DNA of 63,402 bases, filler included, from Lenisia limosa (lineage: Eukaryota; Protista; Breviatea): assembly GCA_001655205.1 (NCBI GenBank). It is 13 parts of 13 records of this genome, joined end to end, with 100 filler letters (N's around TTAATTAATTAA, not from the genome) between each part and the next. Parts side by side here need not be neighbours in the genome. Positions count along the whole stretch, not along the records: positions 1 to 18,266 come from LPNZ01000357.1; 12 more parts are not named here. One strand, given 5' to 3'. A program made the translations under genes and the position numbers. Positions 1,820 to 27,449 of the stretch are shown here, piece by piece (position 1 is the stretch's first letter; every line of letters starts with the position of its first letter). Under the pieces are notes generated by a model. That model worked only from the letters and a program-made list of their open reading frames with translations, had not been told where the DNA came from and did no database searches.

Positions 1820-1877
1820 CAGTGACCTGGAGAAGTCTTGACCGATTTCCTATGTGATTTAGGTCAAGACTTATCCG
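1820..1877. mobile_element. Short hairpin MITE (family C, CAGTGACC ends), degenerate
   Basis: CAGTGACCTGGAGAAGTCTTGACC...GGTCAAGACTTATCC; the same family occurs at 39896, 44960 and 55980. Confidence 0.6.
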
Positions 1878-1950
1878 TATATTTTCATACCATGCAAAAA
1901 TCCATTTCGCATAATGTAGCTCATTTGATTGGTATAATATACCCCCCCAG

Positions 1951-2779: not shown

Positions 2780-3723
2780 CTCAGTTTGAATATTGCTGTC
2801 TCTGAAGCAAAAAAAAGAGGGGGGGGGTTACCAATTAGTCTATTCAATGCGTATGTTTTACCATATTGTCTCAAAACGGCTTTAATTGTTACCAACCAAC
2901 CCAAGGCTTAAGTTGAGCTCCCATTGCAACAGCAGTGCATGTAGTAGTGAAAACACTTCTAAAGGAAATAATAAAATAAGAACAAATGTAAATGGAGAGC
3001 ATGTTTAAAGAATAAAAACACTCTGACAACACATGAGCATGTTGAAAATAATGTTCCTGTTGCATGGGTGGGGAAGTGAATCATTCAATATATTGTGCTC
3101 CTGGGCTTGTGATAGTGCTGGAGAAGACAGTTGCAGCAGGTTGCAGCTGATTTTACCTGTAAACAGGCTGGGAGAGGGAATGTCGGGAGTGTGGACAGGA
3201 GCACCAAATAGCATCCCAAACTACCTGAACTATGCTGGAGGAGGAAATACCACTATTTTGCGCTGTAAAAATTGTTAAGAAAGGCCTTAGAGCCTCATAA
3301 ATAGCACTTGGGAGTGGCGACAGCTACTTTCTTTACCCCCCTGTCACGCTATATTGTATTTTTTCACCTCCCCAGGGTTGTAGGTAGGAATGTTAAAAAG
3401 ATATTTATCGTGTCATATTTGTAGTATTGACGCAAAACAACCCAGTTAAATTTCCGCCGCCGCTGCATTTTTTTTTTTTTTTCATTTTTTCATTTTTTAT
3501 TTTGGGACACCTCTCCACAAAAACTGGACCCTTTGGAACCACTGTGTTACAATGTTTCAGTAGAATAAAAAAATTGAAACGGTACGAGAAAAGAACGTGA
3601 CTGTACTTGCAATAAAAGGTGAAAGAATACATAAGCAGAAAAGCACAGAAGATACAAACAGAAAAAAAACACAATAACTAAAGAGTGCACTACACTCACA
3701 CTATGCTGGCAGCAGTTGGGTGT

Positions 3724-5369
3724 CTACGCCATATTCATGTCCATTCCCATGCCCATCTGGCCTTGCTGTTGGTCCATGCCGGGTTGTTGTTGCATGCCCA
3801 TCTGGCCTTGTTGCATACCCATCTGGTTCTGATCCATTCCTCCGCCCATGCCCATCTGGCCTTGCTGCATTCCACCCATTCCCATCTGATTCTGATCCAT
3901 GCCGCCCATTCCCATACCCATTTGGCCACTTTGCATGTTAGCCATGCCCATGTTCTGGCCACTTTGCATGTTAGCCATGCCCATGTTCTGGCCACTCTGC
4001 ATGTTGCCCATTCCCATGTTCTGGCCTCCCATCATCATGCTGTTGTCCATCCCTCCCATGGACTGCATACCGCCGCCCATCTGGTTCTGGTCCATACCCA
4101 TTCCCATTCCCATGCCTCCTCCTTGCATGCCCATATTGTCCATTGGCTCCGGTCCTAAAGCGTAAAATCAGACAAAAAAACAAAGCCATTTTCAATCCCT
4201 CCTTCATGATTTGGTACCGAAGAGAGAAAAATTCCTGTCAACAAGATGGCATCATACCGGCAGTGAGATCACCAAGATCCATGTTTGCGAGTCCAACGTC
4301 AGTGTTAACTTGAAGGTCGTCCAAATCCATGTCCATGCCGTCAACTGTTGGGGTCAACAAATTTATTTCAATTTAATTGAGAAAAGAAGCGATAGCTAAT
4401 GTAGTAACACAGTGAAAAACCTGCTAAATGATCTCACCCGTCAATTGGCTCCGATTTGGTCAATTTTCCTTCTGAAGTATTGTTTTCCCAAAAATTTTAT
4501 TGTTGCAGAATACGATGTTTTTAATCAAACAAAAAGAAAATTTGCTGAATTTTACAAAAAAAAAAAGAATGATAAAATTGACAGGTGAGATCTTGCTTCA
4601 ATGAGGATGAAAGATGGTTTTTTTCATTTTCCCAAGTATCCAAACTCACCATCAGGGGCAGGAGCGCCACTAGCGAAATTGTTCATATCCTAAAATGATT
4701 AGTTGGGGATTACAAAAAGATAGTGTGAAAATAAACCTGACATTGCTTACCATTCCCATAGAATTCATGTTGTTCATTCCCATTGAGTTCATGTTGTTCA
4801 TGCCCATTGAGTTCATGTTCTGGTTCATTCCCATTGAGTTCATGTTGTTCATGCCCATGGAGTTCATGTTCTGGTTCATACCCATGGAATTCATGTTTTG
4901 GTTCATTCCCATGGAGTTCATGTTGTTCATACCCATGGAATTGTCCATACCCATGGAATTCATGCCGCCCATTCCTTGGTTCATGCCCATGGAATTCATG
5001 CCACCCATGCCTTGGTTCATGCCCATTCCCATTCCTCCCATCATTCCCATCTGGTTCTGATCCATACCACCCATCATGCCCATCTGGCCTTGCTGTTGGT
5101 CCATGCCGGGTTGTTGCTGCATTCCCATCTGGCCNNNNNNNNNNGTTCTGATCCATGCCACCCATTCCCATCTGCCCTTGTTGCATTCCACCCATGCCCA
5201 TCTGGCCTTGCTGCATTCCACCCATGCCCATCTGGCCTTGGTCCATGCCACCCATGCCCATCTGGCCTTGCTGCATGCCCATCTGGCCTTGTTGCATGCC
5301 CATTCCCATCTGCTGCTGTTGCATCATTTGCTGTTGATCCATCATCGGCTCTTCGGACATCACAGGCAC
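3724..5369 (-). repeat. Coding tandem repeats (GQMGMGGMQQ, MNSMGMNQN, QSGQNMGMANM units)
   Basis: Directly visible in ORFs 3724-4143 and 4670-5369; 21-33 nt units are repeated in frame. Confidence 0.9.
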
Positions 5370-7265
5370 TCCGGCGGGAGCTGAAGGAACTCCTGAAATG
5401 CCACCTTCGGTGCCAGACTACATCGTTAGCCACTAAAAAAAAAGGGGGGGAGTTTTATAATAAAAGCTGCAATAGTGGCTGAAACAGGGTTACAAAACAA
5501 AACCAATTTGGAAGTCATAAGGAAGATGGATGCCCTTATACCTCCTCAACGACTGCCATTTCAACTTCCTGCTGAGGCTCGCCACCCGCAGCTGGAGCGT
5601 TAATAATGAGAGAGTGAATAAAAATAACTGCATGACAAACTTGTAAGCAACAAGAAACTGTGGTAATACTGAAATTGACCAAACCAGGGTAAGTTAGCCC
5701 ACCTCCAATGTTACCAGCAACATTGACACCGACAATCGTCTTCTTTGCTTCTTGAGCTTGAAGGGCCTTCTTCTTAGCCTTCTTCTCCTTCTTCTTCTTT
5801 TCTTCTTCGTCATCATCAGAGGCGTTCATCATCTTTTCCGCCTCAAGCTGCTCCACAATGAAGCCTCGCTAGGGGGGAGGGTGAAATACTAGTTTCGATG
5901 ATGAAAAAACAAAACAAAATATAAAAATTGAATTTAAGAATTAAGAGAAAAAAAAAAAAAAGCAAGACTATTGAATCTCTTCACTAAACACAAAGCCCCA
6001 AAGTAAAGGAACATACCTGTTTCTCGAAATCGTGCAAAAGTGCGCCAATTAGGAACAGAATGCCGACATAGGGGAGAACAATACCGAAGACAAGACAGAG
6101 GATTTTGTCAATGGGGAAGTCCTTTACCATGACCACACGTTCTAGAAGTATTAGGACTGTTGCTAAAAAAGAAATAGGTTTAAAACAAGTTCCACAAAGC
6201 CCACCCTCTTCGTCAGGATTGTAGAAACACTTTGCAGTGGTATTGAGTGGATACTCGTCAAGAAAGTTTTCAGCGTTAGTGAAAGAGTAACAGCGGTTGG
6301 GGCACTTGTAGCTAGAGGGTGTAAGAAGGGTATAGATTGCGAAATAAATATTTGCACGCTTAGGAGCAACTCTACTGCTCCAAAGAAAATACGGAATAAA
6401 TATTCGGATAATAGAACACTTCAAAGCAAAAATGCACAAAAAGAGATAATTGATCCGAGAAAGATAGCATACCCGAAAGTGGAGACTACACGAAGGGATG
6501 GGTCTGTGAAGTTGAGGTAGGTGTTTCCTTCACGTCTCAGAGCAATCGGTACGTAGTCGGGTTTGTAGTAGACCTGTCAAAAATGAATACCACCCGACTT
6601 GTAAAATCTTGTTATTGATTTAATATTGCAGAACCCAGACGTAAATGAAACTCAGAAGCGGGGTAGCAAAAAAAGACTGATGCGTATTCCATCTTTACTC
6701 GATCCCACCTTAAATTCCGCACGATGCAGCTGTTCGTCGTACCACGTACTTGTCCAGCGTCCCTGAGGGAAGGTTAAAACTCTGAAACCGAATGTGATCA
6801 ATCAATGCTGAGAGGAGAGGGGAGACACTTCAACTCTCTTTTCTCACCTCGGCACTGTCTTCAACGTAGCAAAGGGTCTCTTTGTACCATCCAGCAATGT
6901 AGATAGTGGGAGAAACGTAAGAAACCATCATTAGACCAATCCAAAATGTAACCAATATCAGTAAAACATGCTTTTTGTTAAGAACGTAATCGTTTCGAAG
7001 GGGAATCTGGGTTAAGGTTCGAGATATAAAAAAACCTTTGCCTGTCTCACACAAACGAAAATTGAGAACATAAAGCAGATGATGTACAAGATAATTCCAC
7101 TGTAAACGGCCTATAATGTGAGATTGGAGGATTCTGTTGGGGAAAGGCCAGTTAATCCGTAACCAAACTTACCCAGAGTGGGAAACCGATCGCCTCTGTA
7201 GAGTTTGAAGACTCGTGAGAGCCCGGAAGACCCGCTTCCAGCTCCAAAGCCACAATTTCAGACAT
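3724..7265 (-). CDS. Multi-exon 3-TM membrane protein with a KCNMB/CaKB-like extracellular loop and a long M/G/Q/N low-complexity C-terminal tail
   Basis: About 13 in-phase exons: MSEIVALELE...FPLW|AVYSGIILYIICFMFSIFVCVRQAK|IPLRNDYVLNKKHVLLILVTFWIGLMMVSYV...|YKCPNRCYSF...TAKCFYNPDEE|RVVMVKDFPIDKILCLVFGIVLPYVGILFLIGALL|...then MGMQQGQ/MNSMGMN repeats ending MDMNMA*. The KCNMB similarity is by motif only. Confidence 0.78.
4430..4592. mobile_element. Intronic MITE-like element with 17-bp inverted ends
   Basis: GATCTCACCCGTCAATT ... AATTGACAGGTGAGATC (one mismatch), inside an intron of the 3724-7265 gene. Confidence 0.55.
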
Positions 7266-7653
7266 TACCTCTACGTACTCGGGAGCTTTGACTACTTTGC
7301 CGTCTGAATTAAACTATAGTAGGATAAAACTGCAACTCTCCCTTATTTTTATTGAAAATGAGCTGATAATTTTGAATAAAAAAAGTCAACTTAATTGCTC
7401 GATATTTATTTCGATATATTTCGAAAAAAACGGTTCCATTTCCTTCACTCCACAGCGAGATCCGTGGATGCGAGATCTGCAAGATCCAGGCGAGGTCCAC
7501 CTCTACAAAAAGAAAAAGAAACAAATAACGCGCATTAACGCTTCAACGCCTCCTATTATATAAGGCAAATAACATCAGGGCCAGTTCAGAAACTCACCCC
7601 CCCCCCTAACCCCCCCTAATTTCACTGAAACATCTGTGAAACCCTGGTTCAAG

Positions 7654-9922
7654 ATGCCTGGAGGCTTAGGCATGGCAAAGAGGGCAGCGCGAATGGGTGC
7701 TCGCCACGCTCCTGACCAGCACAGTTTGAGGGGTGAAGCTTTTGGGAATAATAAATCCATTAATTAGCACTAAAAAATACAAATAAATACAACGAATTGA
7801 GCTATTTGAAGTTCGTTGTCACATTCAATGTAACAATGTCTGATACATTTTATGCTCTTATCATAATTCAGGCCTAGATCCAGACAAGGAAAGGCCATGG
7901 GATACAGTTGTCAAAAAACCGGAGGTTTGCTCAAGAAGGAATTGGAGATATTTATAAAAAGTCTGTACTCTCTCTTTTGGTTTTCAATCTTATCTTTCTA
8001 GGAGCAGAATGAATGGCAAATTCCATTTATGAAGTCTTGTGTTGATTCACCAGGATCATGTATGTTGGTTCCAGCCTTTTAGTGAAGTAAATCAATTGCT
8101 TTTGTGACTTTTTTTTAGTTCTTATGTCATGCTTCTGTTCCCCTTGCTATGCGTTTGCCCAACGTCAACATGTGATGCAGCACAACTGGGATAGTCAGCT
8201 GGAGATAGACTTGAAAGAGATGATATTCACCAACATATTGATTTTTAATTGAGATTATACTCAATGGACGGATGAAAATAGTGTCTCAGATTGTCATCTA
8301 CATAAGCTCTATATTATATGAACTTCTTGACTCCAAAGGCCATATTATACTTGCATTTGCATTAGTCATCTTTGTTTAGACTTCATATGCTGTTCGGGTT
8401 ACTCTTTCGGATCAAAGGTAGGGGAAATTTGGATAAGAGAAGATGCATCTATTTTGCTCCAGCCTGTCCACAGCTCACAACACAGGTACCAATGCAAAGT
8501 AATATGCCATGCCTTTGCCTTGCATTGGAGGTAGGTGAGGACCTTATATAATACATCAATCAATTCGAATGCGTTTAATGTAGTAGTTGCTAGTCTGTTG
8601 AGATCCATTTTATTGTTTCCAACAGGGAACTTGCTTTGCTCCCTAATATGTTCTTAGGTGACTTGTTGTTTGGCCTGTAGCATCAGGGGAAGCAGGCACC
8701 TCATCGGTATGCAAAACAATCAGCGTTTAGAGCTATTTTTGGTTGTAGCAATTTCGCTTTTCTAATTAGACGATGGTTTCACTGTTTAGGGAAGAAATAT
8801 CACATTAAAAGCTCTCGAGTAGAAGATTGTATCATCCACTGTTGCGTAGGTAAGTTTTGCATACACAAGAGTATTCATTTGAAAAGCAGCAAGGAAAAAT
8901 ACAATAAATGGATTTCCACGATCATCCTGCTTCTTCAACACAAAGATTGACAATGTGGATCTTCATCTAACCCGGGTAGGACGTAGTCGTAGAGACCCCA
9001 TGGCCATTCCACGAAGAGCTGCAAGGGTAAATGGGCAGGTCCCTGATACATCCATACTAAAATACTTAACTGTACCCGCACATTTTTTGTGGTTCTTACC
9101 AGAATGTTGACTCCTACCTATCTTATTGTTTCGTTAGACTTTTTTAATCAAATAGGAATACAATCGACGCTGTGCCCTATGCTTCTTCCTTCCAGATAAT
9201 GTCACAAAATGTGATGTCCCTGAAAGTAAGCTTGGTTAACATGAAAGATCTCTATCGTAGAGGAGCCAAGATTGATTATGCTATGCATTCGGATGAATCC
9301 TTGATCATTTTGACACGAACATCACGTACAGTGATAACATGGTATCCATGACCACATCGCGGATAGGGAAACATAAAAGGGACCTGTTTCTGATAATATG
9401 TTACCCCCAGGTCGTGCATGCTTCTTCCCTTTCGACCCATGTGCTGGCTGCTTCTTAACCCAAATGGTGGGCGAGTCTGCACTGCCCCTCCTAAAACCTG
9501 TTCATCTTTCTTATCACAATTTTATATGTTCTATATATTGTAGAGAAAACAAGGTTAAATCTGGTCGAAGCCGTCCACCCCAATCATTTGCCTTACAACT
9601 CTTGTGTACACAGTTTTCTAGCTCCTTGGAGTAACACTTCAACGAATTGATAACCACATAGCAAGTTGAATTGGACTCCCGTAGTTATCCGGATGACACA
9701 ATCGGTAAAGCCATGGGAGAAACTTCCGACCCTAATCGAGTTGACTCTATCGAAGATGTTGCACCCTCGGTATGTTTGTCCAATTCTCCTTTGTTTCCAA
9801 TAACAAATAGTGATTTTCCTGATGCCCCTCTGGTATTAAATCCCTTACTTCCGCCCAACTTTCCCTTACTCTCAAAGGGAGGCGCTGTTATGACTCAAGG
9901 AGACGGTCAACATGGACTCTAG
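7654..9922 (+). CDS. PLAC8-family cysteine-rich protein, multi-exon
   Basis: MPGGLGMAKR...|GLDPDKERPWDTVVKKPE|EQNEWQIPFMKSCVDSPGS|FLMSCFCSPCYAFAQRQHVMQHNWD|FICCSGY|MPCLCLALE|VTCCLACSIRGSRHLI|KKYHIKSSRVEDCIIHCCV|...RACFFPFDPCAGCFLTQM|QVELDSR...|GGAVMTQGDGQHGL*. The CxCxPC and CC motifs are typical of PLAC8. Some middle exons are unresolved. Confidence 0.7.
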
Positions 9923-10146
9923 GATGGTATTGGCTATTTATTTAATCTAGGGGGGGGGGGGATAAATTGGAAAATTTAGTAATGTATTTTGTATTTCTTC
10001 ACATCAGCGATGTTTCAGTGCAGGTAACTACTGCTTAACATCTGCGTTACATTTAACCTTCCCTTTTGAAGCTACCCAATGAATTAGAAACAAATATACA
10101 TAAAGAAAGCAAAAAAAAAATAAAAAGAAACATCTGAAATTCACAT

Positions 10147-11679
10147 TTAGTACACACCACCCTCCTCAAGTTCGTCTTCCTGGTCATAATAATCATCAGA
10201 GCTCTTTGACTATGTCGTCAAAACAAAGAAGGGAGGTTATTTGAAGGAAAATAACATATTAAACAACGATAGGACAAAGAAAAAATATCTTAAAACTACC
10301 CGCTACAAACCTGAAGAGACGCCAAAGCGTTGAGCTTGGACATCAGGACGTCGTGAGACACCGGCTGGTTAGAAGCGTTGCCGGAAGGGCCCAGCGCCAC
10401 ATTGCGCAGCTTGCGCATTAAGTGATTGGATCGGATGGGCTTGGTGAGATAGCCTGGGAAGTAAATATTTGTCTCATGTCTCCTCAAAGGATGAGGAAAG
10501 GATGTTACCCCCCCCCCCCCNNNNNNNNNNNNNNNNNNNNNNNNNNNNNNNNNNNNNNNNNNNNNNNNNNNNNNNNNNNNNNNNNNNNNNNAAAGCCAAA
10601 ACCGAGCGCGTGATTTATATTTAGTGTTATAAAAGCATTTGTTTTGAAAGCAAAAGAGCAAATGTTGTGATTTTCATACTGGCCAAAATCTTCTTTTAAT
10701 TCAAGTAAAAAAAAAATAACGTTATCGAAACTTTTTGTTCGGATATCTGCGACAATTTCTGGATTGGCATTTTTTAATGGCACAAAACAAGAGAAGGTTG
10801 CGGTGCCCCTCACACCATCCATGCCGGCTTGTAAGCACTTGTCCTCGGTATCGCCAAAGGAACGCGCGGTGACCGCAAAAATGGGGACATGCTCATTGGC
10901 ATCTTCATTGGCTCGGATTTCAGCTGTAGCCTCGAATCCGTTCTAAATATGGGTTCGGGGAAATCAAGGAACGAAATAATAATAAACAAAAGGCAAACAT
11001 CTGTGCGTGTGTGGGGGGGGGNNNNNNNNNNNNNNNNNNNNNNNNNNNNNNNNNNNNNNNNNNNNNNNNNNNNNNNNNNNNNNNNNNNNNNNNNNNNNNN
11101 NNNNNNNNNNNNNNNNNNNNNNNNNNNNNNNAGCGAGGATGACAACAAGCTGAAGAAATAGTGGAAACTAAGCACAAAACTGCAGCTTGGGCTGTTAATA
11201 TCACCTTCAAATACATCTACTATTCATCTGAGCCAGAGGTGATCAGAAGAAGAACCCCTCCAACCATCTTGGGCATATCCAAATCCATCAGAATGCAGTC
11301 GTACTTGTCAGGATCTGCAAGATACTTCTCAGCTGCTTGTTTCCCATCACTGACAGGGAATGCCTTGTATCCCATCGTCCTATCGAGCATCAGAAAAACT
11401 CAAAAAAAGGGAAACAAACCTGAGGAGCCCTGAGGCAATATTAAGGGCAACGTTATTGTCATCAGCCACCAAAACACGAAGCTGAGCAGAAGGCTCAGGG
11501 GTATGAAGAAGAGTGGGGGCTGGAGCACGAGGAATCTGCCCTTGCTTGCCGACATCTACATCTAAGAGTATATTAATAACACGCCAATTCCAAAAAGTAA
11601 AGACGGTTGAGGTTCCCCTCAAACTCTCACTCAGCATTTGCTGGAGGAGGTTAACTGAAGCATCGCGGTCGTTTTCCAT
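10147..11679 (-). CDS. Stand-alone response-regulator receiver (CheY-like) protein
   Basis: Spliced: LRVLVADDNNVALNIASGLLR|TMGYKAFPVSDGKQAAEKYLADPDKYDCILMDLDMPKM|DGFEATAEIR...PIFAVTARSFGDTEDKCLQAGMD|GYLTKPIRSNHLMRKL...|SSDDYYDQEDELEEGGVY*. Acidic pocket, phospho-Asp, Thr and Lys-Pro are all present. Confidence 0.85.
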
Positions 11680-12238
11680 TTTCACAATCAAATTAAAGGC
11701 TCCACCTTTTGTTTAGTGGACTTACACACCGAAAAAGAACCAAAAATAAGGTGATTCAGACTTCTTGTTCCGTCTTAGTACAGCGTTTTATTTATAATGA
11801 TAATAAAACCTCTCAATTCCTTGCCTTAAGTTGAGGCCGTAAACGCAAAAAAAAACAATTTAAATATGTGCAGTTCATGGGGTGACGCTTGAGCCTTGGT
11901 TATAACTTACTGTATATGGAAGTTTGGTGAAGCTTTGAAACGGCTAAGTTCACCTCGGTTAGTTTCCCCTTCACTACATACACAGCTATATCACGATATT
12001 ATTTCGGGTTTTGTTTGGGCCAAATTTGGTCACACTTGGGAGGGATACCCATTCATCGATTTTGGAACTTGACAGGACTCATAATACAGGAAAGGTCTGT
12101 ATTGTGGTTTGTTCATATGGAAAGGTCAATATTATGATACAGAAGCGTTTAAGTTTCTCAAATTTCGTTGTACCGTATTGGTCATTGTTCTAAGATGACA
12201 CTTGTAACATTTTGATGACACCTGTAATTATTTCAGGA

Positions 12239-15200
12239 ATGCAGTTGAAACAGCTCTTTCTCCTGTTTTTCTGCGGCTTGGTGCTTGGTTTGCCAAGTGG
12301 TCATTATATTTCAATATTGAAATGAAAGCTTCTCACTGACGCTCTAGTTTCTTCTACGACTGCTGACTCATGTTCCCTCAGTGGCTTGCCTCTCAAGAAA
12401 CAAACCTGCAAAATCTGGTACGGGAAATCTCTTGTTTTTTATTACAATTTGCTGATTGAACAAAGGGAAGAATACACTGCAGTATTATTTTTGTTTTTGT
12501 TCTTGTTGTAACTTCTTACAGTTTGGAGCAAAGTGACTGTGGCTGGTGTACCGCAAATGGAGGGTTAGTGGGCTGCATCCATATTTCTACAATTTCAAAG
12601 TTCTTTCTTTTGGCTTTTATTAGCATCTTCTAATTTCTCAGTTCTTGTATTGAAAAGCTGACGGACTCATCAAACCCTGAAGAATGCCCTGCTGCAAATT
12701 GGTTTGACTCTCTTGGATGATATATTCGTTCTCTAATAACTACTTCTTAAAATTGTCTTTGTTTCAGTTGTCTTGAAAGACCATGATGTCCTCCCTCTCT
12801 GTATGTTGCATTAAATTTCAGGGTACTCCAAGAAAGTGCTATTACAAGTCTACCAGTTCCCTCAACCGAAGGCGTGTCCCCTAAAGAGGTGTGTCACGGG
12901 TTTTCTATCAATCAGCTGGAATGCCCCCAATACTATCTAAAATGAAGGATTTTATTCCATCTCATAAGGGCTAACCATATTCATTGTCAACCACTTCTTG
13001 TGATTTTTGTGACAGTTTTTTTGTGAAGACAGTGAAAACCACCCTTTTATTGTTTAGGTTTCCATTCGACTAAGAAGAGGTCAACCATTAGAGCTGACGT
13101 TTGAATTCAAGGCCATCAGAAAGAGCCTTGACTTATCAATTGTCGAAGATGTGTCGAACTCCTATAGGTAAGAAATTGATTTGCGGTTATACGTCTTAGA
13201 AATGACCTGGTTTATCTCAAGAGCGCTTTCACAAACGAAGATACTGGTATGTTACCCAATATTCTTCTAAATATTCGCCAGGAATTACAAACAAAATTGA
13301 AAGCGAGTTGCTGGACATTGAAAGCAACCCGCACCTTCAGCTTCGGATGGCTTTAGTTACGTTCAACCAAAAGGTGTGGTTAGTTGTTTTCATTTTATCC
13401 TATTACCAACCACCTTACACCCAGCCGTACGCTCCTTTTGGCTATCTTCATGCCACGCCCGGGGAAGAAAACTTTGGATTCAAAGAGCATTGCAATTTTG
13501 GGGGTTAGCAACAATTTTCATTTATTTGTTCTGTCAGATTGTGCAATTTCAAAAGGAAAATAATAATCCACTATTTACTATTTCAGATATTACATCGACA
13601 TGTGACCAGACAGCTGACAAGCACTGCCTCTTTAGAGCAAAGCTGAACTCTGTCACAATCCATGGCACTATCATGCACCCTGAGGTGAATGCGTAGAACA
13701 TATCGCATCTGCAACTTTCATAATTGCAAACATCATACCTTTTCAAAATTGGTACACTAAATGAGAACCCAATACGATAATATATCCCACGCTCATGAAA
13801 TTCAGCTGGCCACTGATGCTCTAATACGATCCCTGTCATCCATGCATTGGGACGACACTCACCGTCACGTTGTCATTGTGTCCACTGACGCTTTGGTTGG
13901 ATTTGACTTGGTGCAATTGAGATACTCGTTTGATATGTACTCTTATACATTTTCAAAAGTAATGTTGGATGAATTGATTATCTCAATGCTCCGCATATTA
14001 TGTGCTTTGTTAAATGCAAGAAGACTACCTTGAAATAGTGTTACCTTTTCCATGTTTATCTTTACTAGCTTCTTGTATAATAGTGTAGTCAAGCCTTTCT
14101 GGAGAAGTCAGGGGACACTTTAATGTCAAGACAACACACGGTATGATGAATATAAATATTTGATATTGAAAAATGCAGTTCATGAGTTCAAAAATCTCAA
14201 CGAGTTATTGTTTAGAATCTTCGGATACAAACTATGTCTGGGATGGTTTCCTCCCAAACACTATGAAGTGGGAAGACACGGTTAGGAGACCTATTGAAGG
14301 TGGATTCATGGTTAATAGAGAAGAAGTTGCAGAAGATGTAAGGAATGTAAATAAATGTTATTTTTAGTTTCCTTCTTTCACGATGATTAAACGTCTTTTG
14401 ACTAAATACAATGTGGTAGGTCAAGTGAGATCGCTCTTATTGCCTGAATATTTTAGGTTCCAGTTTTTGCTATCAATGGAGGGACAACAGTTGACTATTT
14501 CTATCAAGGTATGCATATCTCTTGCTGAAAGAATGACTTTTCAGTTTTAATCAACGAGCTTGGTTTTGGAAATGTTCAGACGCTTTGTAAGTCCATTTTC
14601 CCGTTTGTTAACCCTACCAAGCGTCGGATTCCTCAAATCTATTTTCTGCTATTTCCGATGCATACGCTCTCCTCTCTTCTAAGATGGCTTTACATGTTTG
14701 CAATTGTTAAAAATTCTGATTCTTTAATAACACAATAGTAAATACTTGTAAAAACATGTACGCTTTATCAAAACCATCAATGCAAAATGAATCCTCTAAA
14801 TCAAAGGCTACAATCAGTATATTTATTCCAAGTCTTTCAGTTAGTGTTTACTTTCATATATTGTTGCTTTGAGCAACATTCTCTTGTAGCTAGTCACTTC
14901 GACAAACTTGATTCATTCAGACGGCATTAGATTACTACAGTCTTATTTCAGCTGAAGATGGAATTGTCCCTTCTGAATACGTTGACATCCCTTCTACTGA
15001 GTTGGTTTCATTTCAATGATGTCGTTTTCTATTTGTATATTGACTGTTTACAAATTGCAACTCTTTTCCTTTTCATCAAACCAAGTCCTCCCGAAACAAG
15101 GAACTTCACTGTAAAACTGGAGTACGCTTCATCCCGCCCTTGGCCCCCAAGTGAAGACTCAACACAGGTGGCCTTTCTTGGGATTGCAATTCGGTTCAGC

Positions 15201-18147
15201 AATTGCTGATACATCTTACAACACAACATTGTCCATTGTTCTTTTGTTTGGAGTGAAGCCTGTTTTACTCAGTTGATTTGACAGATTAACCTTTTCATCT
15301 TTATGTATAAAGTTTATTAAACATTAAAACTGTCAATGATTAAAAAAGAAATGTGACTCTTAAAAAACACAAATTTGTCTATGAATGTCTGGCAAATTGA
15401 GTGGTAACACAACAAATGACTTGATAGATTGTTATGAGTAGCATTGGATGGGAGTCTGTCAAAATCAACGTTGATTTCGTCAAGGTATGATCAATACACT
15501 CAATTCAGAACGATTTTACATGATAAAACTTTCTAATTTGTTTCACCCTAGGAGAGCATCATTTTACTTTAACTCCAGTGTTTTAAATATATTTATCTGA
15601 ATCAGCCAATGATATAATAATAGGAGTGTGATTGTGGTGGAAGCACGTGCCCCGAAGACTGCAATGGTGCAAATGGCGAATGCGATGTAAGTTATCTTGT
15701 CTGTTCAGAAAACAATGGGTTAATGAATGAAACATGAGTTTCATTTTCTGCAATTGAAACCTTGGTTATTTCCTTTTAATATCCTGCAAATATTGTATTT
15801 CAATTGGTCACATAGGCTTCATTTGACTTTAGTGTGGAAGATGCATTTGTAACAACCCTTATACCCATGGTGATGCCACTTTGACTTCTGAAATGACATG
15901 TGGTGGGTTTTATTTCTCTTTTTTGGGGTGTATTTTAATTCTTTTTGTTTCAATGTGAGAGTTTCGCTTATCCCTTAAAAATAGCTGAGATGAAAAACTT
16001 ACACTATTTACATTCCATTTTAGGTTGCAATCCCACTCTAGAATGTCCAAATGATGGTGCTTGCAATTCTCAAGGGGCATGTCAATGTGGAATCTGTGTC
16101 TGTTCAGACCCAACCCAATGGTACTGAAGGGAACAATTGATTTTCTCCTCAATAACAATGATTTGGAAAAATGAGAGAATACATGAAATTTATCCTTCAA
16201 CGTTCCAGGATTGGAGACGAATGTCAGTGTAAGGTGCTGGAAGAAGGTACTTGTGGACATGGTCAAGCCGTCTGCACGACACTTGGCACTCAATGCATTG
16301 TTGGTACAAAGCAGATTATTTACTTAGAATTGATAAGTAGCGCTTTGAAAGATCCCATCACAGCGTTGTTTATCGTTTTATTTGACTGATGTAGTGTGAC
16401 GAAGGCTATATTGATGGTGAAGATGGTCCATGTACCTGTTCTACAGATGTCTGTTCAAGCTGTCTAAATGGAGATTGTGTCTGTGGCTCATGTCAAGTAT
16501 GTCGGGGTTGATTATGAGAAATCAAATGATGACATTGACTTCAGGCTGTGTTAATTTTGGAATACATTCCATATGGATATGGATATGGATATCGAAGACC
16601 GTCTTCACACTTCAATTGGCATATTTCATTACACTACGTTCTTATTGGTACCATATTGAACTAACCATAACTTTATCTTTTTAGTGCCATGCCGGGTGGA
16701 AAGGAGACGCCTGTGACTGCTCCACCGACTGTCCCTCAGATAGTGTTTTCACAGAATGCAGTGGCAATGGAATATGTAATTGTGGTACTTGTGAGGTGGG
16801 AATGGTTTTAGTTGGTGTTATAATCTCTCAAAAATTTTCGTTGCAAGGTATTATTTTACAAAAAAACACGTTTCTGGTAGTCTTACAGTTTAGTGTGACG
16901 TAGGGTGGAGTGGACAACCTTTGTCAGTCCATGATTGCAGTTGTGACACCACCAAAGAATGTCCCTTGTTCAACGGACTTGAGTGTGGCGGAGCTAAATC
17001 AGGAGTAAGTCTTAGTATCGATTTATTTCAGCGGAGAACAAGACGAAAGTTTTGCCATATTCTTAAGGAATAAAGCACGTTTTTCGGACAGAAGTGAATC
17101 TCACGAAAAAATAACTATTACTTTTTAGGTATGTGAATGTGGCAAATGTAAATGCAAAGCTGGATACGGACCTGTTGAAGGCCAAACGGATGAGACAAAC
17201 GACTGTTCCTGTTTAGCCCTTCCCTGTCCCTCAGCTTGCTCAGGGAAGGGTGAATGCGTCTGTGGAACTGTGAGTTGGTTGCTGTTCGTGTCCATTTGAC
17301 CTTGAACAATATTATTACTCTTTCGTCAATATGTAAATTTTAGACCACACCACTTCATTACTATTTAGTGTGTCTGTGAAGAAGAGTGGAAAGGTGACAC
17401 GTGCTCCTGTCCCGCCACTAAATCCTGTCCCGGCCTTGTTCACGGCACTTGCGGAGAGTGCAGTGAGTACATCTGTGATCCTGGGTACTATGGCAATCAG
17501 TGTGAGGTAATTTGGGAATTTGGAAGCTCTTTGTATAATAATTTAAAGTTGCATGCTTTCTAACTTATTCAGTGTCCAATTTCGTGTGATGTACCTTGTT
17601 TAAACGGAGTATGTAGTTGTGGAGTTTGCGGGGGTGACTTAAGGTCTCAATACAATTGACAATATTTCCACTTCAGGTTTGTGAATGTGATGACGGATGG
17701 TCTGGTCCAACTTGTGCATGCAATGCCACTGCGGAAGCCCCTGAAAACTGCATGGAACCTTGGGGTATTGCTTTGTGTGACGGAACCTGCCAATGGTATG
17801 AGGTGAATTACTACAAAATCATGTGATAAACTATCAGAGTAACAACTTATCAGGTTCACAACACTGATACTTCTGACATTTTTCAGTGCTACTGAGTACG
17901 CTCATCCAGCAACAGGCCCTAAAGACTGCTCTTGCAGTCTACTTGGATGTCTTGGAGGATGGTAGGCTGGGATATAGTAGTTAACAATTTAATTGTTTTT
18001 AGTAACGAATTGAATTCTGGGGGCACATGCGTCTGTGGCCAATGTCAATGCAATGAAGGGTTCTCTGGCGAACAGTGCGGCTGCAAAGAGGGAAAGACAT
18101 GTGCACTGGATGATGACGGTTTTGTCTGTGGAGGTCCTGATAGAGGA
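12239..18147 (+). CDS. Integrin beta subunit with an expanded Cys-rich EGF stalk; 3' end (TM and tail) missing at an assembly join
   Basis: Signal peptide MQLKQLFLLFFCGLVLG; PSI domain (C..C...CGWC); SPKEVSIRLRRGQPLELTFEF; beta-I MIDAS LDLSIVEDVSNSY; LRMALVTFNQK; HWDDTHRHVVIVSTDA; VPVFAI; SDSSNLFSAISDAYALLSS; then repeated GxCxCGxCxC..GWxGxxCxC units over about 13 exons. Confidence 0.92.
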
Positions 18148-18266
18148 GTAAGCGCATCAAGATTTCTTTTCCTACAGCAAATTAGAATAATTCATTGTTT
18201 CTTCTTAATAATATAATGTGAAGACCATACATACACCGAAGCCAACATATCAATACATACTGAATA

Positions 18267-19289: not shown

Positions 19290-22200
19290 AACCATATTTT
19301 TAATTTTGAACTGAACGCTATCCCTTTGCATGGCCTTGAACCTGACAGTGACTTCTTGTTCTATCCAGTCGTCAAAACCTTGTAAAGCTTCTTCTAAGGC
19401 AAATGCCTAAACACAAAATGAACACTCAATTAAGAACTAATCAATACCACAACCAGAACAAGCATTTCAAGATTAACCATAATCCTACCATTGTAAGCGG
19501 CTTCCAGATTGACCCCCATTCAGTGATAGTGGAGTAGGTCTTACGAATATGAGGGATAGGGGGGACGAAAGCAGCAAGTGGGCTCTAAAACGGATCACTG
19601 CAGTCAAACTGATTGAATTGCAGTTTAAATAGTTTTAACAACTGAAATTAGAGAACAGTGCAAATAAAGTAATGCGTCCAAAAGTCTAAAACATAACCAG
19701 TTACATACACAATTGTGTTCAAGGCAGTAGTCTTCCCCAATTTCACGTTTTAGTAATTGTGAAGAGGGTTGAGGATGGTTACGATTTCGATTATTCTTAG
19801 TGGTTAATTTGTTTGGTAAGAAGATTAAAAATGAAACAAGACCCAGCAATAAGAGTAAAGTGGCTGAAAAATTCTCACTAAAAGAGAAAAGAGATCAGCT
19901 GCTAATTATTTTTGATTCTACGAAACATTATTCGGTAAGTTTGGTAGAGAAGATAACCACTTACCGAAACAGCGAATTTTACCGAAAATATTTCCCCCAC
20001 AAGAGAGCTGGGATTTGTCTAAATAATCAAAATTGATTATTGGCTGTTATATATGATATAGCTACTAAGTATATATCACACCGTCAATATATGTATTATC
20101 TGTGAATTTCCTCTATCTGTGAATTTTTTTTGAAATAGTATACGAAAAATTTTGCTAAAAATATGGCTTATAACAGAGAATTGTCATAACACTCTTGTTG
20201 CTAACAAAAATGAACTTTTATTGTTGATGACAACATTTGTATTTTGGCGAGATTGCTGCNNNNNNNNNNNNNNNNNNNNNNNNNNNNNNNNNNNNNNNNN
20301 NNNNNNNNNNNNNNNNNNNNNNNNNNNNNNNNNNNNNNNNNNNNNNNNNNNNNNNNNNNNNNNNNNNNNNNNNNNNNNNNNNNNNNNNNNNNNNNNNNNN
20401 NNNNNNNNNNNNNNNNNNNNAGGACGGTGTGATATAGTACTAGTATATAACAAAAATATTTATCAGCATAAAAACAATAATATGAATTGACAAATACAAC
20501 ATACTGGCTATATATCAGTTTCCAAAGTAATAATATGAAAAATTGTGAATTTAGGATAGGAGCCTTTAAAAAGAGTCAGGGATAATTCCAAACGCACATG
20601 ATCATGAGATTCGAAGATGTGGAAATCTTGTGATGGTAGCGATAATGAATATGATGGATCAGCTGCACAAATTCCCTTAAAAATTAGGCAATACATGTTA
20701 CATTTTAAATTGAAATATGTAGAATATATATTATATATAATATGATAGAAGCACTTACTCAATTCTAAAACCAAAATAACTTTTACAGATCTGTAAAAGA
20801 AGAAATGTTAAACATATAAAAAACATAAAGTAATTATCACATTGATTTGAACATCAACAAACCTTTATCTCAACAGAATTTGAGGAAACAATTGTTATGG
20901 GAAGTACACAACTATCATTTGACAGCTCACGGCCACAAAGATCTAGCTTCAATTCTGACTCGGTCTTTTAATGTAAGCTTTGGTAAAAAGATTGCAACCT
21001 TTTCAAATATTTAGGCATAAATTTTGATAATCTGAAACAAATAATTGAATGACCTTAGTGTGAAATATTTTGCTGTTTAAGGGACATTAGGTTTGCGAAT
21101 TGGTTATATTTTGTTTGTTTTTATTTGACCCTACCTGACTGATGGCATAATTAGCACTGTTGGCTAGTGCAGCCATCATCATCATGTCGTCCATGTAGTC
21201 AAAGAAATCGTCATCAGGAATTGCATCCTTGCCATCCTGATTAATTGTCAGAAAACCCATGTTATTGATATTACTATGGTCTGTTGATGATCATTAATTT
21301 GTACATAATTATTGAATCTTGAAAACAAACTTAAGGAAATATCAATTATAACCCCATCATACCACAAATATAGTAAGCAGAATGAGCATATTGACAAAAT
21401 CAGGATAACTATCAAGTGGCGATGTCCATGATGCCATTGGCGACTTTCCCAATGAGGTACTGTACGTTTGCGGGGTGATACTGAATTGACTAGAAGGAAC
21501 ACCCTAAGGCATTGGGGTTGAACAGTGCTGCAATCGAGGTTGTTTTCAATTTGAATGAAAAACAAATTGGTGTTATAGCGAATCATGTGGCATTGTTATA
21601 TGTGTAAAATGAATACAAACACATATTAACTGAATGATGATGGTTTTATTATTTAAGAAGATAAAATATCTTACCTTTTGAGGTTTATTTTTAATAGAAA
21701 AGAGTCCGGCGATTTTGCCATTTTTGAATTGCCTTCCAGCAACCATATTGGCGTTTTTGATAAAGGTGTCAACAACTACTTGCGGAATTGACGTGTGTAC
21801 GTCGTTATGAATCTGTGATATTATTCCATATTTTTAAACAAGCAATCAAGAGAACATATCACACCGTCCATATATCTGTGAATTTTCCTCTATCTGTGAA
21901 TTTTTTTGAAATATAAGAAAAATTTTGCAAAAAATATGGCATATAACAAAGAGAATTGTCATAACACTCTTGTTGCTAACAAAAATGAACTTTTATTTGT
22001 TGATGACAGCATTTTTATTTTGGCGAGATTGCTGCTTACTTGTCTAGCGTATGTTTAATGTAAAATACATATAGGTTGGTGTTTAAAACCGCGAACATGA
22101 TTAAAACTGCGAACAAAAAAGGAGGCTTTTCTTTCATTTTTCNNNNNNNNNNGCTGAAGAAACTCGAATTGAAACTGACAAGAAGGAGGTTGAGTCGACG

Positions 22201-25041
22201 GCAAGACTAGTGAAGTCCGTGCAAAGCTTCCAGCTTGACCAGCAAAAGTACCCTTTTGGAAAATTAACTTCCACCTTATTTAACCTTATTTAAGAAGATC
22301 AGTCACTAAAAACCAAATTGAGCACAATAAACAAATATATTTGGTGTTTTAAATATTTTGTTTTCAAATAATAAACAAAAACATCCCTTTTTGGTCATCT
22401 CTTCACAAGCGTGCACTATCATTTTCGACAGTGATATGAATACCTCATTCCACTTGTTTGAACAAGTCTCAATGACACTCTGATACACTCGGAATGAACC
22501 TTTGTGATATCTCCGTTATCATTTCGACCCGTAGTCGGTCATATGATCATATAACTGGTGGATATGGGTCAGTATTTCTAAGAAATATTGTCTCTTGATC
22601 GGCGAAATAATTTGAACAACCCAATAAATAATTGGTTGAAAAATGTTGTGAAACATAGAATTAAAAGGCTCTTATATCTTATAGAGAGAAGAAAGTACCA
22701 TTATTGTCCAATATGGTCCATATAAACACCCCCAAACTTCAACAGGTTTTGAGAGAAAAAAATTTTCGGCAAAATTTTTTCTCTCAAAACCTGTTAAAAA
22801 ATGAGACAGTTGAATTAGAAACTCTGAGTCTATTGTTATTCAGAGCATATAATAAGATGAAATACAATTAGAAACAAACAAATTGAGACTTCATACAGAA
22901 AATCTTTTGAAGAGAACCGTTAATGTCCCAAATAGTCCTTCATATACCCCCAAACTTTTATTAATCGTGTTTCGTGACTCTTTTTTTTGCCTTCCGCCCC
23001 ATAAACTTGTTTATAGTTATACCCCTGGTTCGTACCTTTGCTGGAGAGTTGAGGACAATCTATAAAGTTAGCATTTGAAGCAAACTCAGACTTAAGATAC
23101 ATTCAATGGAAAGATGCCCGGAAGCCAACCGTTTTAGCCGTTGTGGTGTTTTCCTCAGCAGGTTGCGCGGGGAGTAGAGAAGGCAACATTCATGGTATCG
23201 GAAGTTAGCCGAACCACCCATCATTTACAAAAGCTCTAACAAATCTTCAACATTTTGATGATCAGCATCCAAAATCCTTTAATTCTCGTTTATGGCAGAG
23301 GTGCTTATTTTAAAGCTTCTAATAGCCAAAAACAGATGATGTCACCCAGTTTACTTTGTGGAACCAAGGTACCCCTATATTTATATATTTTTTTTTCGCT
23401 TTAAACAGCTTCAGCAACAGCAAACCTGAGCTTTTTGAAGAATATGAGCTATAATATATCAAAAGAGGCAAATCCCGGGAAATTGAAGAAGATCATGCAT
23501 GTTCTGATAAACTAGCTGGTGCATCATTCCGGATTACATCTTCTTTACAGTGGGGTGGGGGGATACAAGAAGATGTGTACATGTAGTGTCTAACCCACAA
23601 AGGTGATGATGGTTGGACACCAGTGACAAGAAGACTGTGAGGAAAGAAAGCCTTCACAGCATCCAACAGATTCCCAAGAGCCTCCATTGCTTCTGGCTTC
23701 TTGTTCACCAAAATTCGGTACAGAGCAGGGAAATGACCTGACACAGTCAACGATAAATATGGTGAAAGTCAGACGAAGGAAACAAGCAATCAACAAACTA
23801 TAGCCATGAAATCATCAATTAGGATGAATTTGGATACTAAAATAATATATAACAGAAAGAGAAGAGCAGAATATACACTTTTAAAGCCGCCAAGCTGCTC
23901 TTAGCCTTGGTTTGACACGTTGAGCAAACCTTCAACACAGATTCAAGACTGTGGGTGTCTACAGCCTTTCCGAAGACAACAATAAAACCTTTTGCCCAAG
24001 TGAAAAAACCTTGATGATCCCGTCTCAGTACGTATGAATTTCGCTTGGATGCAACTCTATAATCAACAGGCTACAGTATTAATACTAATACACCAACGAA
24101 TGATGAGTGAAAATTTGACCTGGTTTTACGTAAACATTGAAATACGGTTGACAACTTTACATACATGAACACAAGTGGTGAGGTTTGATAGCACATATAG
24201 GTAGAGACCGAACAGGCAAGAACATTGATTACAAATGATGAGAGCCTTGTTCTTAACCCATCTGTGTATCGAAGTAGTGAAGTGAACAAATATGTTCGGC
24301 AAACCTGTTGTCAACAATAAGGGGAAATGGGTACAAGGTAGCTTTGATGTTCCTTTAGATTTGTCCTTTTTGAGTTTGTTTGGTATGCTTACTCATTGCT
24401 ACATATAACAGGGCTCCCATAAACGAGTATGGAATCTGAATCGTCTTGGGAAACCATTTCACCACCAATTGCTAGCAACTTCCTTGGCCTTATCAGATGA
24501 TGTCTGGCGTTCAATATCTCGGACTTTTCCATTTTTCTTGATTTCTGAAAATTTTAACACCCAAAGTCCGCTTCCGTTTCAGGTTCGGATTTTCTACCTA
24601 ATCGATCATCCTCATCCTGAGTTAAGGGGGGAATTTCTGTTGTTAGGTCCCCTGAGCAGTGAGGGGTTCGTGATTTAGAAGATTTGCTGTGTTAATATGA
24701 GCAGTGAGGGGTTTGTCATGTGGAAGATTTGCTGTGCTAATATTAGTTCTTCAGCTGCCTTAGAAGGGTTTTTCTTTCTTTTAATCAATACAAGCTTGAA
24801 GCTAGTCTAGCGAAGCGCTGCAATTCAAGGTCAAGGAGAAGAAGAAAACCCCACCAAGCAGTCTTTACAAATTGTTTAAGCCCACCGACAAAAAGACGTC
24901 GGCCTGGAGACAGCACCGTCAGATTGTCTGTGCGGTGGAGAATGAGGGAGGTGTTGAGGAGACAACAGCAAGTTTTGGACTACGGCTACAAAAAGGTTAA
25001 AAAGTGTTGATTGCTTTGTAATGAGTTGACTTACGCATCAT
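19290..25041 (-). CDS. Long multi-exon hypothetical protein gene (could be more than one gene)
   Basis: Minus-strand exon-like blocks with GT/AG ends: ATGATGC|gtaagt at 25041; EKSEILNARHHLIRPRKLLAIGG; GFFTWAKGFIVVFGKAVDTHSLESV; GHFPALYRILVNKKPEAMEALGNLLDAVKAFF; IHNDVHTSIPQVVVDTFIKNANMV; DGKDAIPDDDFFDYMDDMMMM; AFALEEALQGFDDWIEQEVTVRFK. The full phase was not reconstructed. Confidence 0.4.
20074..20434. mobile_element. MITE family D copy (contains an internal N gap)
   Basis: TATCACACCGTC ... GACGGTGTGATA ends; the internal 180 bp is nearly identical to 21857-22035. Confidence 0.75.
21857..22035. mobile_element. MITE family D, partial copy
   Basis: Left TIR plus body nearly identical to 20074-20259; no right TIR seen. 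Confidence 0.7.
22741..22795. repeat. Near-perfect inverted repeat (about 25-bp arms, 4-nt loop)
   Basis: AACAGGTTTTGAGAGAAAAAAATTTT-CGGC-AAAATTTTTTCTCTCAAAACCTGTT, with a single A/T indel. Confidence 0.9.
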
Positions 25042-25949
25042 GTTTGTTTCCATGCCTGTGCAACCTTTTATCAACCATTTTGCAATCTTGCTTAATATTG
25101 TATCGTTCAAATTCATACTTAATTTTGGGGCACCAACAAACCAACAACACCTGCAACACAAAACTTCAATAGATGGTATGATAACCTTAACCTTAACCTT
25201 ACTACTTAGAAGATTTTTTTCTCATTATTTTTTTAAGCCTCTTCCTTTTTTCTATTAAAAAATGAAATACACCACGGTGTATTGTTTGCAAGCCTAACTT
25301 ATGGGAAAGGCTTCCAAGGATGGGCATCAAATCACACCTCACCCTCGGTCATTTGTTCCAAATAGTCCACCGCTTACCTCGAAGGAGTTACTTTGGGCAG
25401 ACTTGGCCTTCGCAGAATTGTTTTAATTCAGTTTTGCAAATAAACTGCGGGTCAGTAGAAACAGGAAGGCCTTTTAAAAATAAAATATAAGACAAAATTG
25501 GCGGGCGAGAAGGGCGAAAATGCGTGACTTCGGTGGTGTGACGCTCCTAGTGAGAAAAATCGGAGTTAGACCCGCTGGCGAACAGGAAAGATTTTGGGAT
25601 TGTGGCATGGGTAAGTAGATAGCTAAAATAGTTTTTTCCCTTTCTAGGTCACTCAGTTAACTCACAATATCAATGGAGAAGTATAAATAAGGTGATAAGG
25701 CCAGCCAACAGAGTCTCATTAAGCACTCGCTCTCGGACCACAGCTCATGGTAAGTACTGCTACCTGACTGTTATCCACCCAAAGAGATGCCAGTCGTACC
25801 AAGTAATGTTTTAGGAAACAGCCCAACCATTTGAACTTGTTTTGTATTTCGCGTTTTGAATTTTATTCGAATGCAAAATACGGAAAGATATATTGTAAAG
25901 AATGAACAATAATGCTAAGAATAACCATCGCTATACTCCTTCCTGTATC

Positions 25950-27330
25950 ACAGCTTCCTTAAAAATAATTGTCCTGCCGTTTCAAGTTTCACACTACCTG
26001 TTATTTCCTGCAACCCCTATTCATGATTTTACCCTGATTGAGTGTGCTGTTGTTATTATTAAGCAGCCAGTTCTTCAGAATTGCAACAGACACACAATAA
26101 CTTACCCCTCGTATATAGGATTCCATTTACTTGAAAGGTTCTTTGGTGTATTACATCAAAGCTTCTTTTTATGTTTCAGCACCCTGATAGTAGTGCACCA
26201 CTTCACAGTGTTGCTTTATTAGAAATATTTTAAAATTTTGAAAGGAAAGGGATAGAATGAATTGAGCCTGTACCACATGACAGATACTACAAGAGGGTGG
26301 CTTGGGCTCTTTTTTGCTTGTGAGGTTGCTGTCACCGCACCCTCTTCACAAAGTTTATTTTGTGTGGGTTGTGTGTAAGGAAAGAGCAAGCAAAGGGCAA
26401 GTGGGGGGGTGCGCAATTATAGTGCGCAAATATAATCGGCCACAAACATATCATACTCTACTTTACATTGACAACTGTTAATTACACAAAACCAAATACT
26501 TGAACTTGAACCTAAACACGACGGAGGCGTTTTCTTGTAGTTGGGGATTGTGGGATTGTGGGAGCATCGGGGAGGCTGAACGGCTTGGCTTGCTCAGTGG
26601 ATGGGAGAGGCTTTTGACGGTAAAGCAAATGACGAAAGTTAATATTCTTAATGGGCACCCAGAGAGACTTAAGAAAATGGCGAAGAGGGATGGGTGATCC
26701 ATCTGGCATTTTGATAGTATCTACTCACTTAGTTTTGTCGTCTCTGCTGTCTCTTTCAAATTATCAACTTCCGCAAACACTTCTTCTGCCTCATTATCAG
26801 ATTCATTTTCGTTGTCTTCTTCTGCAGTCTCAGCTTCCTAAACGCAAGAGAGGTGATGTCCGAAGGCTTAGTTTCTGGAACAAACCTGAAAATATGTTGA
26901 GATCCATAGATGTTTCTGTTTTTCTTTGGATGTATATATTTTATGTCTTTTATCATTAAGCAAGTCAAGAAGAATCAACTCTCTTATAATTTTCAAATTT
27001 TCTTACTTGAAATACTGAACGTTAATGTGACGCGAATTGACTCCCCTCAGTCATCAGGTGCTAGTGCCAGCCCTCTCCTGTTCAATTGTTTTTTTTAATG
27101 AGAAAGCTGTTAAAGTTTGATTCCACTGTACTTCTCTGTAGGCTGCTGTTTTCTATTGTTTGCTTTTCCAACAGCAAATATTGAATATACATTTATATTG
27201 AAGAAAGCGGGGTGAGGGCCGCTGGCAGAAAGTGCATAAGGGATGAAAGATTTTGAGGAGGTTATTATGGTAAAAAATGTCAATTTAAATTGTTTTTCTT
27301 GAGGAGATGTTGGAAGAGTAACCGCCATAT
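25950..27330 (-). CDS. Hypothetical multi-exon gene with an acidic stretch
   Basis: Exon-like blocks EAETAEEDNENESDNEAEEVFAEVDNLKETAETTKL|gtgagt, DGSPIPLRHFLKSLWVPIKNINFRHLLYRQKP and KEPKPPSCSICH; ends uncertain. Confidence 0.35.
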
Positions 27331-27449
27331 TAGAAAACGACGGCCTCGAACTTAAGTGAACTAAACGTACTCTATGTGATGATTTCTACCAGAAGATGAT
27401 TCAAAGGAGTTATGGGCAAAAGAAGAAAAAAAAATTCACGTTCGCTGGG

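Follow-up and report, generated by a model that had tools for sequence, protein, structure and literature searches.

An integrin beta gene at the end of a breviate scaffold

Does the last gene on scaffold C357 of the breviate Lenisia limosa encode a true integrin beta, how long is its stalk, and where does the gene end? The scaffold makes up positions 1-18,266 of the window, the stretch of 63,402 nucleotides that was analysed here, and belongs to a eukaryotic assembly of 49.0 Mb in 11,727 contigs. A first, sequence-only reading had placed an integrin beta at 12239-18147. We conclude, with a probability of about 85%, that the scaffold holds the 5' part of a breviate's type-I membrane integrin beta, about the first two fifths of the gene, in the order signal peptide, PSI domain, hybrid domain with the beta-I domain, and stalk. 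All features of the gene given below lie on the plus strand.

The gene was read by hand from the sequence between 12150 and 18266 and consists of 33 exons. All 32 introns are of the GT-AG type, with lengths of 32-317 nt, and the coding sequence of 2661 nt translates into 887 residues without a stop codon. The start at 12239 and the end at 18147 are both borne out by this model. The scaffold has a G+C content of about 39% and numerous short introns. An exon finder trained on this same model recovered 28 of the 33 exons, including all stalk exons except the last one, where the mismatch was solely an appended stop. This agreement is a consistency check only and no independent proof of the model. 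The underlying DNA was compared with two other assemblies. The independent ENA contig ERZ3820729 NODE_1048 was the same in 6022 of the 6022 compared bases (12239-18260), and a Logan contig of the DNA run X1 covered 12200-18190 with zero differences. The least certain exons are those in the middle of the head at 14084-14140, 14179-14280, 14952-15121 and 15439-15484.

The head follows the canonical domain order

The predicted protein was compared with P0086, a reference canonical integrin beta of 775 residues in which Pfam finds PSI_integrin, Integrin_beta (371 bits), I-EGF_1, EGF_integrin and Integrin_b_cyt. Residues 32-664 of the model aligned with 33-644 of P0086 by blastp in one collinear alignment (E 4e-19), with a head identity of about 24%. 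As in canonical betas, the alignment places the PSI domain first and the beta-I domain as an insertion in the hybrid domain. Exon 1 (12239-12299) contains the start codon and the signal peptide MQLKQLFLLFFCGLVLGLPS; an alternative in-frame ATG lies upstream at 12215. The PSI domain (residues 29-78) is encoded by exons 2-5 at 12371-12822 and aligns with residues 33-84 of P0086, which Pfam assigns to PSI_integrin. Its cysteines follow the pattern C..C..C..CGWC..C..C, the start of which reads ..C..CKIC. The N-terminal half of the hybrid domain (residues 79-122, 12823-13123) is collinear with P0086, reads VSIRLRRGQPLELTFEFK and ends in VSIRLRRGQPLELTFEFKAIRK. The C-terminal half (residues 393-449, 14666-15484) was also placed by the alignment with P0086; it ends in IGWESVKINVDFVK, with the final VDFVK at 15484, and its exon choice is the least certain.

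Between the two halves, 12 exons at 13124-14665 encode the beta-I (VWA) domain, residues 123-392. A profile built from eight Pfam-verified Integrin_beta (PF00362) segments gave 63.0 bits (E 3e-18) on these residues of the spliced model, whereas among 2000 shuffled versions of the head the highest score on the same profile was 7.1 bits. When the spliced model was used as a query for phmmer, many PF00362 proteins were matched. Single exons gave lesser matches to P0086: the exon at 14624-14704 aligned with residues 366-388 (E 3e-4) and the exon at 13058-13165 aligned weakly with residues 122-155 at the DLS.S site (E 0.23). The sequence-only reading had recognised a signal peptide and PSI, hybrid and beta-I domains, and the alignment and the profile agree with it.

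The metal-binding residues were then read from the alignment. The metal ion-dependent adhesion site (MIDAS) is intact. Its motif D131-V-S133-N-S135 (13148-13162) is aligned to DLSYS of P0086, E242 (13682-13684) to PEGG and D270 (13887-13889) to TDD, so that D131, S133, S135, E242 and D270 all stand opposite the MIDAS residues of P0086. The site adjacent to the MIDAS (ADMIDAS) is in part changed and comprises S135 and N138-D139 (13201-13206). The synergistic metal-binding site (SyMBS), spread over 13365-13684, is degenerate when aligned to FVDK and SGNLDSPEG of P0086. Asp is replaced by N181, and Asn and Asp by T237 and M239; P241-E242 are unchanged.

The stalk runs to the end of the scaffold

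Exons 21-33 (15624-18147, residues 450-887) encode the stalk, as defined by a repeat hidden Markov model (HMM), by core counts and by blastp to the EGF region of P0086. The part within the scaffold has 438 residues and 86 cysteines. The repeat HMM found 11 core-first integrin-type EGF modules, eight with a strict CxCGxCxC core and three with variant cores. Exon 33 ends at 18147 with ...FVCGGPDRG (...CGCKEGKTCALDDDGFVCGGPDRG), which corresponds to the first four cysteines, and thus the first half, of a 12th module. The count of 11 repeats with a 12th begun, proposed earlier, is therefore confirmed. A terminal-exon reading, in which the gene would end with QIRIIHCFFLII and a stop codon, was rejected because it would break this module after its fourth cysteine. 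On single stalk exons, Pfam gave weak matches to EGF_integrin, I-EGF_1 and EGF_2. The stalk motif of obazoan integrin betas has been defined as CXCXXCXC (Kang et al., bioRxiv 10.1101/2020.04.29.069435), and the CxCxxCxC pattern of the present gene agrees with this definition.

A palindromic repeat breaks the assembly in intron 33

The donor after exon 33 is in phase 0 and opens intron 33 (18148-18266, GTAAGC...), which is cut by the scaffold end. In its last 61 nt (18206-18266) the scaffold carries one perfect arm of an element, palindromic and about 146 nt in total, that resembles a miniature inverted-repeat transposable element (MITE). A complete copy with both arms is found at C8309:155-299 and a diverged copy at C754:894-1043. 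Besides C357, this arm of 60-61 nt terminates C9679 and C11127, and the ENA and Logan contigs also stop inside the arm. Since a palindrome with identical arms folds the assembly graph back on itself, both flanks end as contigs with the same arm. We conclude that the palindromic repeat in intron 33 is the cause of the assembly break.

The gene most probably goes on across intron 33 on the minus strand of C9679. The hexamer CTTCTT directly abuts the element in both C357 and C9679, whereas C11127 has no such flank. When C9679 is reverse-complemented, an AG acceptor appears 44 nt past the arm and is followed in phase 0 by TCDCGVCDC. This fits C357, because the half-finished module ending in CGGPDRG requires that core next. 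Across the join, intron 33 would be about 250 nt long, which is inside the local range. The two contigs also complement each other: the head lies on C357 alone, and C9679, which also has stalk, supplies the tail that C357 lacks.

The minus strand of C9679 contributes about 35 exons with an open frame and intact splice sites, the first EGF exon at about C9679:13450. Together they add 23 EGF modules and then a tail-like domain rich in cysteine (CQCASGWTGKDCESC...DCVWCEDIC...). After it come the transmembrane helix SGTVLLGLGIVLLIAAVF and the cytoplasmic tail (KAGRVAKDRAEYNKFKVSNRDKSWNKDENKLFEGRARINNQLNPLYDP...). The full tail reads KAGRVAKDRAEYNKFKVSNRDKSWNKDENKLFEGRARINNQLNPLYDPDSSLSPKTPLSPNAHAI and its stop codon is at C9679:6482-6484. 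It contains the membrane-proximal KAGRVAKD and the motifs DRAEYNKF...W...NPLY. Joined, the two parts would encode about 1907 residues with 288 cysteines and 34 modules. Residues 1592-1875 of this joined model aligned with 462-761 of P0086 (E 3e-33), with DRAEYNKF...W opposite DRREYARF...W. The C9679 tail exon alone matched P0086 with an E of 4e-4, and Integrin_b_cyt of Pfam gave 15.9 bits on one C9679 exon, below its cut-off of 23.4. The transmembrane helix and the NPLY tail are assigned to the C357 gene through the inferred join. As to the recovery of the 3' end that the earlier reading had proposed, the contigs of the DNA run and of ENA stop in the repeat, and a probable end lies on a second contig. 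The earlier figure of about three times the animal number of EGF repeats holds for the 11 complete modules in the scaffold as against four, but is probably an underestimate, as the 34 modules reached with C9679 would be about 8.5 times that number.

Evidence against the gene and its continuation

Several observations weigh against this interpretation, some against the join and some against the gene itself. The join of C357 to C9679 is supported by no read or contig, and the contigs of the DNA run and of ENA stop in the repeat. The arm is common to three contig ends, so C357 was paired with C9679 on the basis of the 6-nt flank repeat and of gene logic. No target-site duplication is visible at the complete element copy on C8309. 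These points would favour an explanation in which C357 carries a real integrin beta and C9679 the tail of another paralog, so that the true 3' end is missing from the assembly and the count is only 'at least 11.5'. With the arm at the ends of C357, C9679 and C11127, at least one partner must be missing, and the genome has several fragmented integrin beta genes, with heads on C4186 and C7904 and tails on C8067, C11714 and C5727. However, only C9679 presents an EGF exon in the correct orientation, phase and module register 44 nt past the arm, and CTTCTT flanks the element directly on both sides. Moreover, the published ITGB of the breviate Pygsuia has the same number of modules, 34, and the same KAGx4(D/E) tail. 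We regard the explanation by a second paralog as unlikely and keep C9679 as the continuation of the gene.

Against the gene itself stands, first, that the only RNA run of the study, a polyA 'metatranscriptomic' library, contains none of this stretch, so that there is no transcript evidence. Pfam searches of 20 single stop-free stretches gave weak, sub-threshold EGF matches and no match in the head, a result of the small size of the exons, which do not suffice singly for Pfam. Six-frame scans of the own genome with PF00362 and PF08725 listed paralogs only, and neither C357 nor C9679. The same kind of scan detected neither Integrin_A_Ig_1 (PF08441) nor the talin domain I_LWEQ (PF01608). Such scans are insensitive in an exon-fragmented genome, and misses there are not evidence of absence. 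Furthermore, the SyMBS of the beta-I domain is degenerate, and the membrane-proximal NPxY position in the C9679 tail reads NKLF. Errors of detail are possible in several exons of the head and in a few of the stalk exons of C9679, which were obtained by manual splice reading or with the self-trained finder.

Could the gene then encode no strict integrin beta, but another adhesion protein with VWA and EGF domains (Sib-like or teneurin/tenascin-like), or be a decaying pseudogene? The single-exon Pfam matches were all below threshold and some were to teneurin/tenascin EGF models; the altered SyMBS, the lost proximal NPxY and the absent RNA support point the same way. On the other side, the order PSI, hybrid, beta-I, hybrid and I-EGF is collinear with a canonical integrin beta over residues 32-664, the hybrid domain carries the beta-I domain as an insertion, and CxCxxCxC in the stalk is the integrin pattern. 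Intact splice sites and a frame that stays open through the 33 exons of C357 and about 35 further ones on C9679 speak against decay. We therefore consider both forms of this alternative very improbable and hold to an integrin beta. That the EGF exons might come from a separate transcript had also been raised. The DNA evidence gives no sign of this, and the RNA run, which lacks the stretch, speaks neither for nor against it.

Source lineage and neighbours on the scaffold

The gene next to the integrin beta, at 10802-11712 on the minus strand, encodes, as judged by exon matches to PF00072, a receiver (REC) domain of the type found in hybrid histidine kinases, with its coding sequence split by an intron. 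The exon at 11223-11399 (L045:3265-3441, minus strand) matched positions 19-57 of PF00072 with an E of 1.2e-5, and the next exon matched positions 56-95 with an E of 0.011. The closest solved structures in the PDB were histidine-kinase receiver domains (E 8e-6). Part of this gene falls in a gap of the scaffold, which is filled by the ENA contig (L045:2844-3754, gap-free).

To our knowledge, two-component systems of the histidine-kinase type are absent from animals. As the adjoining, intron-containing gene encodes such a receiver, C357 is not of animal origin, in line with the non-animal genome that had been proposed. Contamination by animal DNA was rejected on the basis of this neighbour, of the repeat common to other contigs of the genome and of a paralog with the published Lenisia motifs. 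The source lineage of the integrin gene is very probably the breviate Lenisia limosa or a very near relative, and the run metadata, from a 2016 study with a polyA 'metatranscriptomic' library, agree with this.

Two further features of the scaffold were seen. The gaps of N at about 1640-1700, 5100-5110, 10590-10670 and 10950-11150 are bordered by poly-G/poly-C runs and give the impression of artefacts of sequencing or scaffolding, not of biological features. On the minus strand at 3680-5420, long open frames have a high content of Met, Gly, Gln and Asn (GMDQNQMGM..., NSMGMNNM...), are made up of tandem repeats of 15-51 nt and enclose a small gap. These frames matched no Pfam family.

Further integrin genes in the genome

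Long CxCGxCxC stalks also occur in other integrin beta genes or gene fragments, on C6972, C5666, C9083, C8067 and C4186, and the integrin beta family of the genome has at least five or six members. On C6972 (4198-10170, plus strand), a head and a cytoplasmic tail are located about 6 kb apart on one contig. A search with a beta-I piece of this paralog returned mostly bacterial proteins with an Integrin_beta domain and one canonical integrin beta, P0086.

Another paralog lies on C8929 (30683-31549 and about 37767) and has DLSDSFEND, FINK, NEPS and the tail motif RFNAAMKE. For the ITGB of Lenisia limosa, 130D 132S 134S, 137N 138D, 182N, 215N 216E 217P 218S and 'RFNAAMKE present' have been tabulated (Kang et al. 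Suppl. Table 2, bioRxiv 10.1101/2020.04.29.069435). Since residues and tail motif agree exactly, the C8929 paralog is the tabulated gene. The C357 gene has MHPE where that gene has NEPS and is therefore a paralog and a different gene.

A search for integrin alpha and talin had been suggested with the first reading. FG-GAP exons above the cut-off were found on C2918, C8929, C10139, C7618 and C8811, all eukaryote-type contigs; talin was not detected in the insensitive scan described above. Breviate alpha subunits of 3312 and 3346 residues are listed, the latter being the Lenisia ITGA (Kang et al. Table S1, bioRxiv 10.1101/2020.04.29.069435). On two contigs, FG-GAP exons stand head-to-head with an integrin beta: on C8929 at 26251-27983 (minus) versus about 30.7-38 kb (plus), and on C7618 at 13133-13258 (minus) versus 21276-25534 (plus). 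The layout points to alpha/beta pairs that are transcribed divergently from a common upstream region, an arrangement for which we met no report in the literature examined. Combined, the observations would describe a family of at least five or six very-long-stalk betas with some linked and possibly co-regulated alpha/beta pairs. In this family the C357 gene would be the true ortholog of the Pygsuia ITGB with its 34 modules, and a gene other than the described Lenisia ITGB. We put this combined picture forward tentatively and consider it somewhat doubtful as a whole.

Proposed function of the long leg

By analogy with known integrins, the head would pair with the beta-propeller of an integrin alpha, for which the FG-GAP exons in the genome are candidates, and would bind an acidic ligand residue through a divalent cation held in the MIDAS. 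The stalk would be a chain of disulphide-rich I-EGF modules that sets the reach of the head. With a leg of 34 modules, the distance between head and membrane would be several times that of animal integrins. One module of an animal integrin is about 2.5 nm long, and from this value the extended leg would, as a rough guess, measure about 80-90 nm. Such a leg would match the very long legs of the breviate integrin alphas (about 3300 residues). Alpha and beta legs that are both long and similar in size have been suggested to make up one long heterodimer (Kang et al., bioRxiv 10.1101/2020.04.29.069435).

At the cytoplasmic side, the tail with DR.EY.KF, W and NPLY might, again by analogy, recruit cytoskeletal adaptors with a phosphotyrosine-binding (PTB) domain such as talin. 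Adaptor binding may depend on the distal NPLY because the proximal NPxY position is NKLF. No FAK/Src, parvin or vinculin has been reported for breviates (Kang et al., bioRxiv 10.1101/2020.04.29.069435), and for this reason a simpler downstream coupling than that of animals would be expected. The gene is a candidate for testing the role of very long integrin legs in a surface-adhering amoeboflagellate with epibiotic bacteria.

Comparison with known integrin betas

Long-stalk integrin betas of breviates, apusomonads and Capsaspora are already published, and the phenomenon is not new. The sequence-only reading was right that long stalks are known outside animals; breviates were missing from the lineages it named, and the novelty is accordingly lower than it implied. 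For integrin origins, on which it expected the gene to be informative, the picture is unchanged, as long-stalk integrins that predate animals had already been described. What is apparently new is one more, undescribed integrin beta paralog of a breviate and its reconstruction over two contigs. The work shows how a full gene can be recovered from two contigs split by a palindromic repeat, and it provides better annotation for comparative studies of the integrin adhesion complex.

With the integrin betas of animals, for example P0086, the C357 gene shares the domain order, the DxSxS of the MIDAS, the PE and TDA motifs, the DSSN..AY helix and the cysteine pattern of the I-EGF modules. The joined model also has the transmembrane helix followed by DR.EY.KF...W and NPxY/F. 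Animal betas have four I-EGF modules, whereas the C357 gene has 11 or more, and 34 by way of the join. Its SyMBS is, by alignment, degenerate and the C-terminal half of its hybrid domain shorter, and the proximal NPxY on C9679 is replaced by NKLF. The betas of Capsaspora owczarzaki, Thecamonas trahens and Ministeria vibrans, compared here by their description, likewise come from unicellular obazoans and have expanded stalks of tandem CxCxxCxC modules. They belong to other lineages, and the published module counts examined for them are lower, for example 14 in the Ministeria paralog 2.

Within the breviates, the head of the Lenisia ITGB on C8929 is closely similar to that of the C357 gene (AVRKSLDLIFVEDLSDSFENDL versus AIRKSLDLSIVEDVSNSYRNDL). 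They share the S..ND form of the ADMIDAS, and the first SyMBS position is Asn in both. They differ in NEPS versus MHPE, and the published Lenisia ITGB has the tail motif RFNAAMKE and '12 EGF + 4 EGF-like' modules.

The ITGB of Pygsuia biforma (Brown et al. 2013, as tabulated) has 1793 residues, 'EGF present 34 times', a transmembrane segment, NPXY and 'KAGX(4)E' (Kang et al. Suppl. Table 2, bioRxiv 10.1101/2020.04.29.069435). Compared by these tabulated features, it is also a breviate protein with PSI and beta-I domains, a transmembrane helix and NPxY. Its ADMIDAS reads S..DD and its SyMBS is better conserved, whereas the C357 gene has S..ND and a degenerate SyMBS. The tail motif KAGX(4)E corresponds to KAGRVAKD in the joined model, and its 34 EGF modules in 1793 residues correspond to 34 modules in 1907 residues, a match that depends on the join. 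By the tabulated features, the joined gene of C357 and C9679 is likely the counterpart of the Pygsuia ITGB. This suggests that a stalk of 34 modules has been kept between Pygsuia and Lenisia and would therefore be functional, not accidental.

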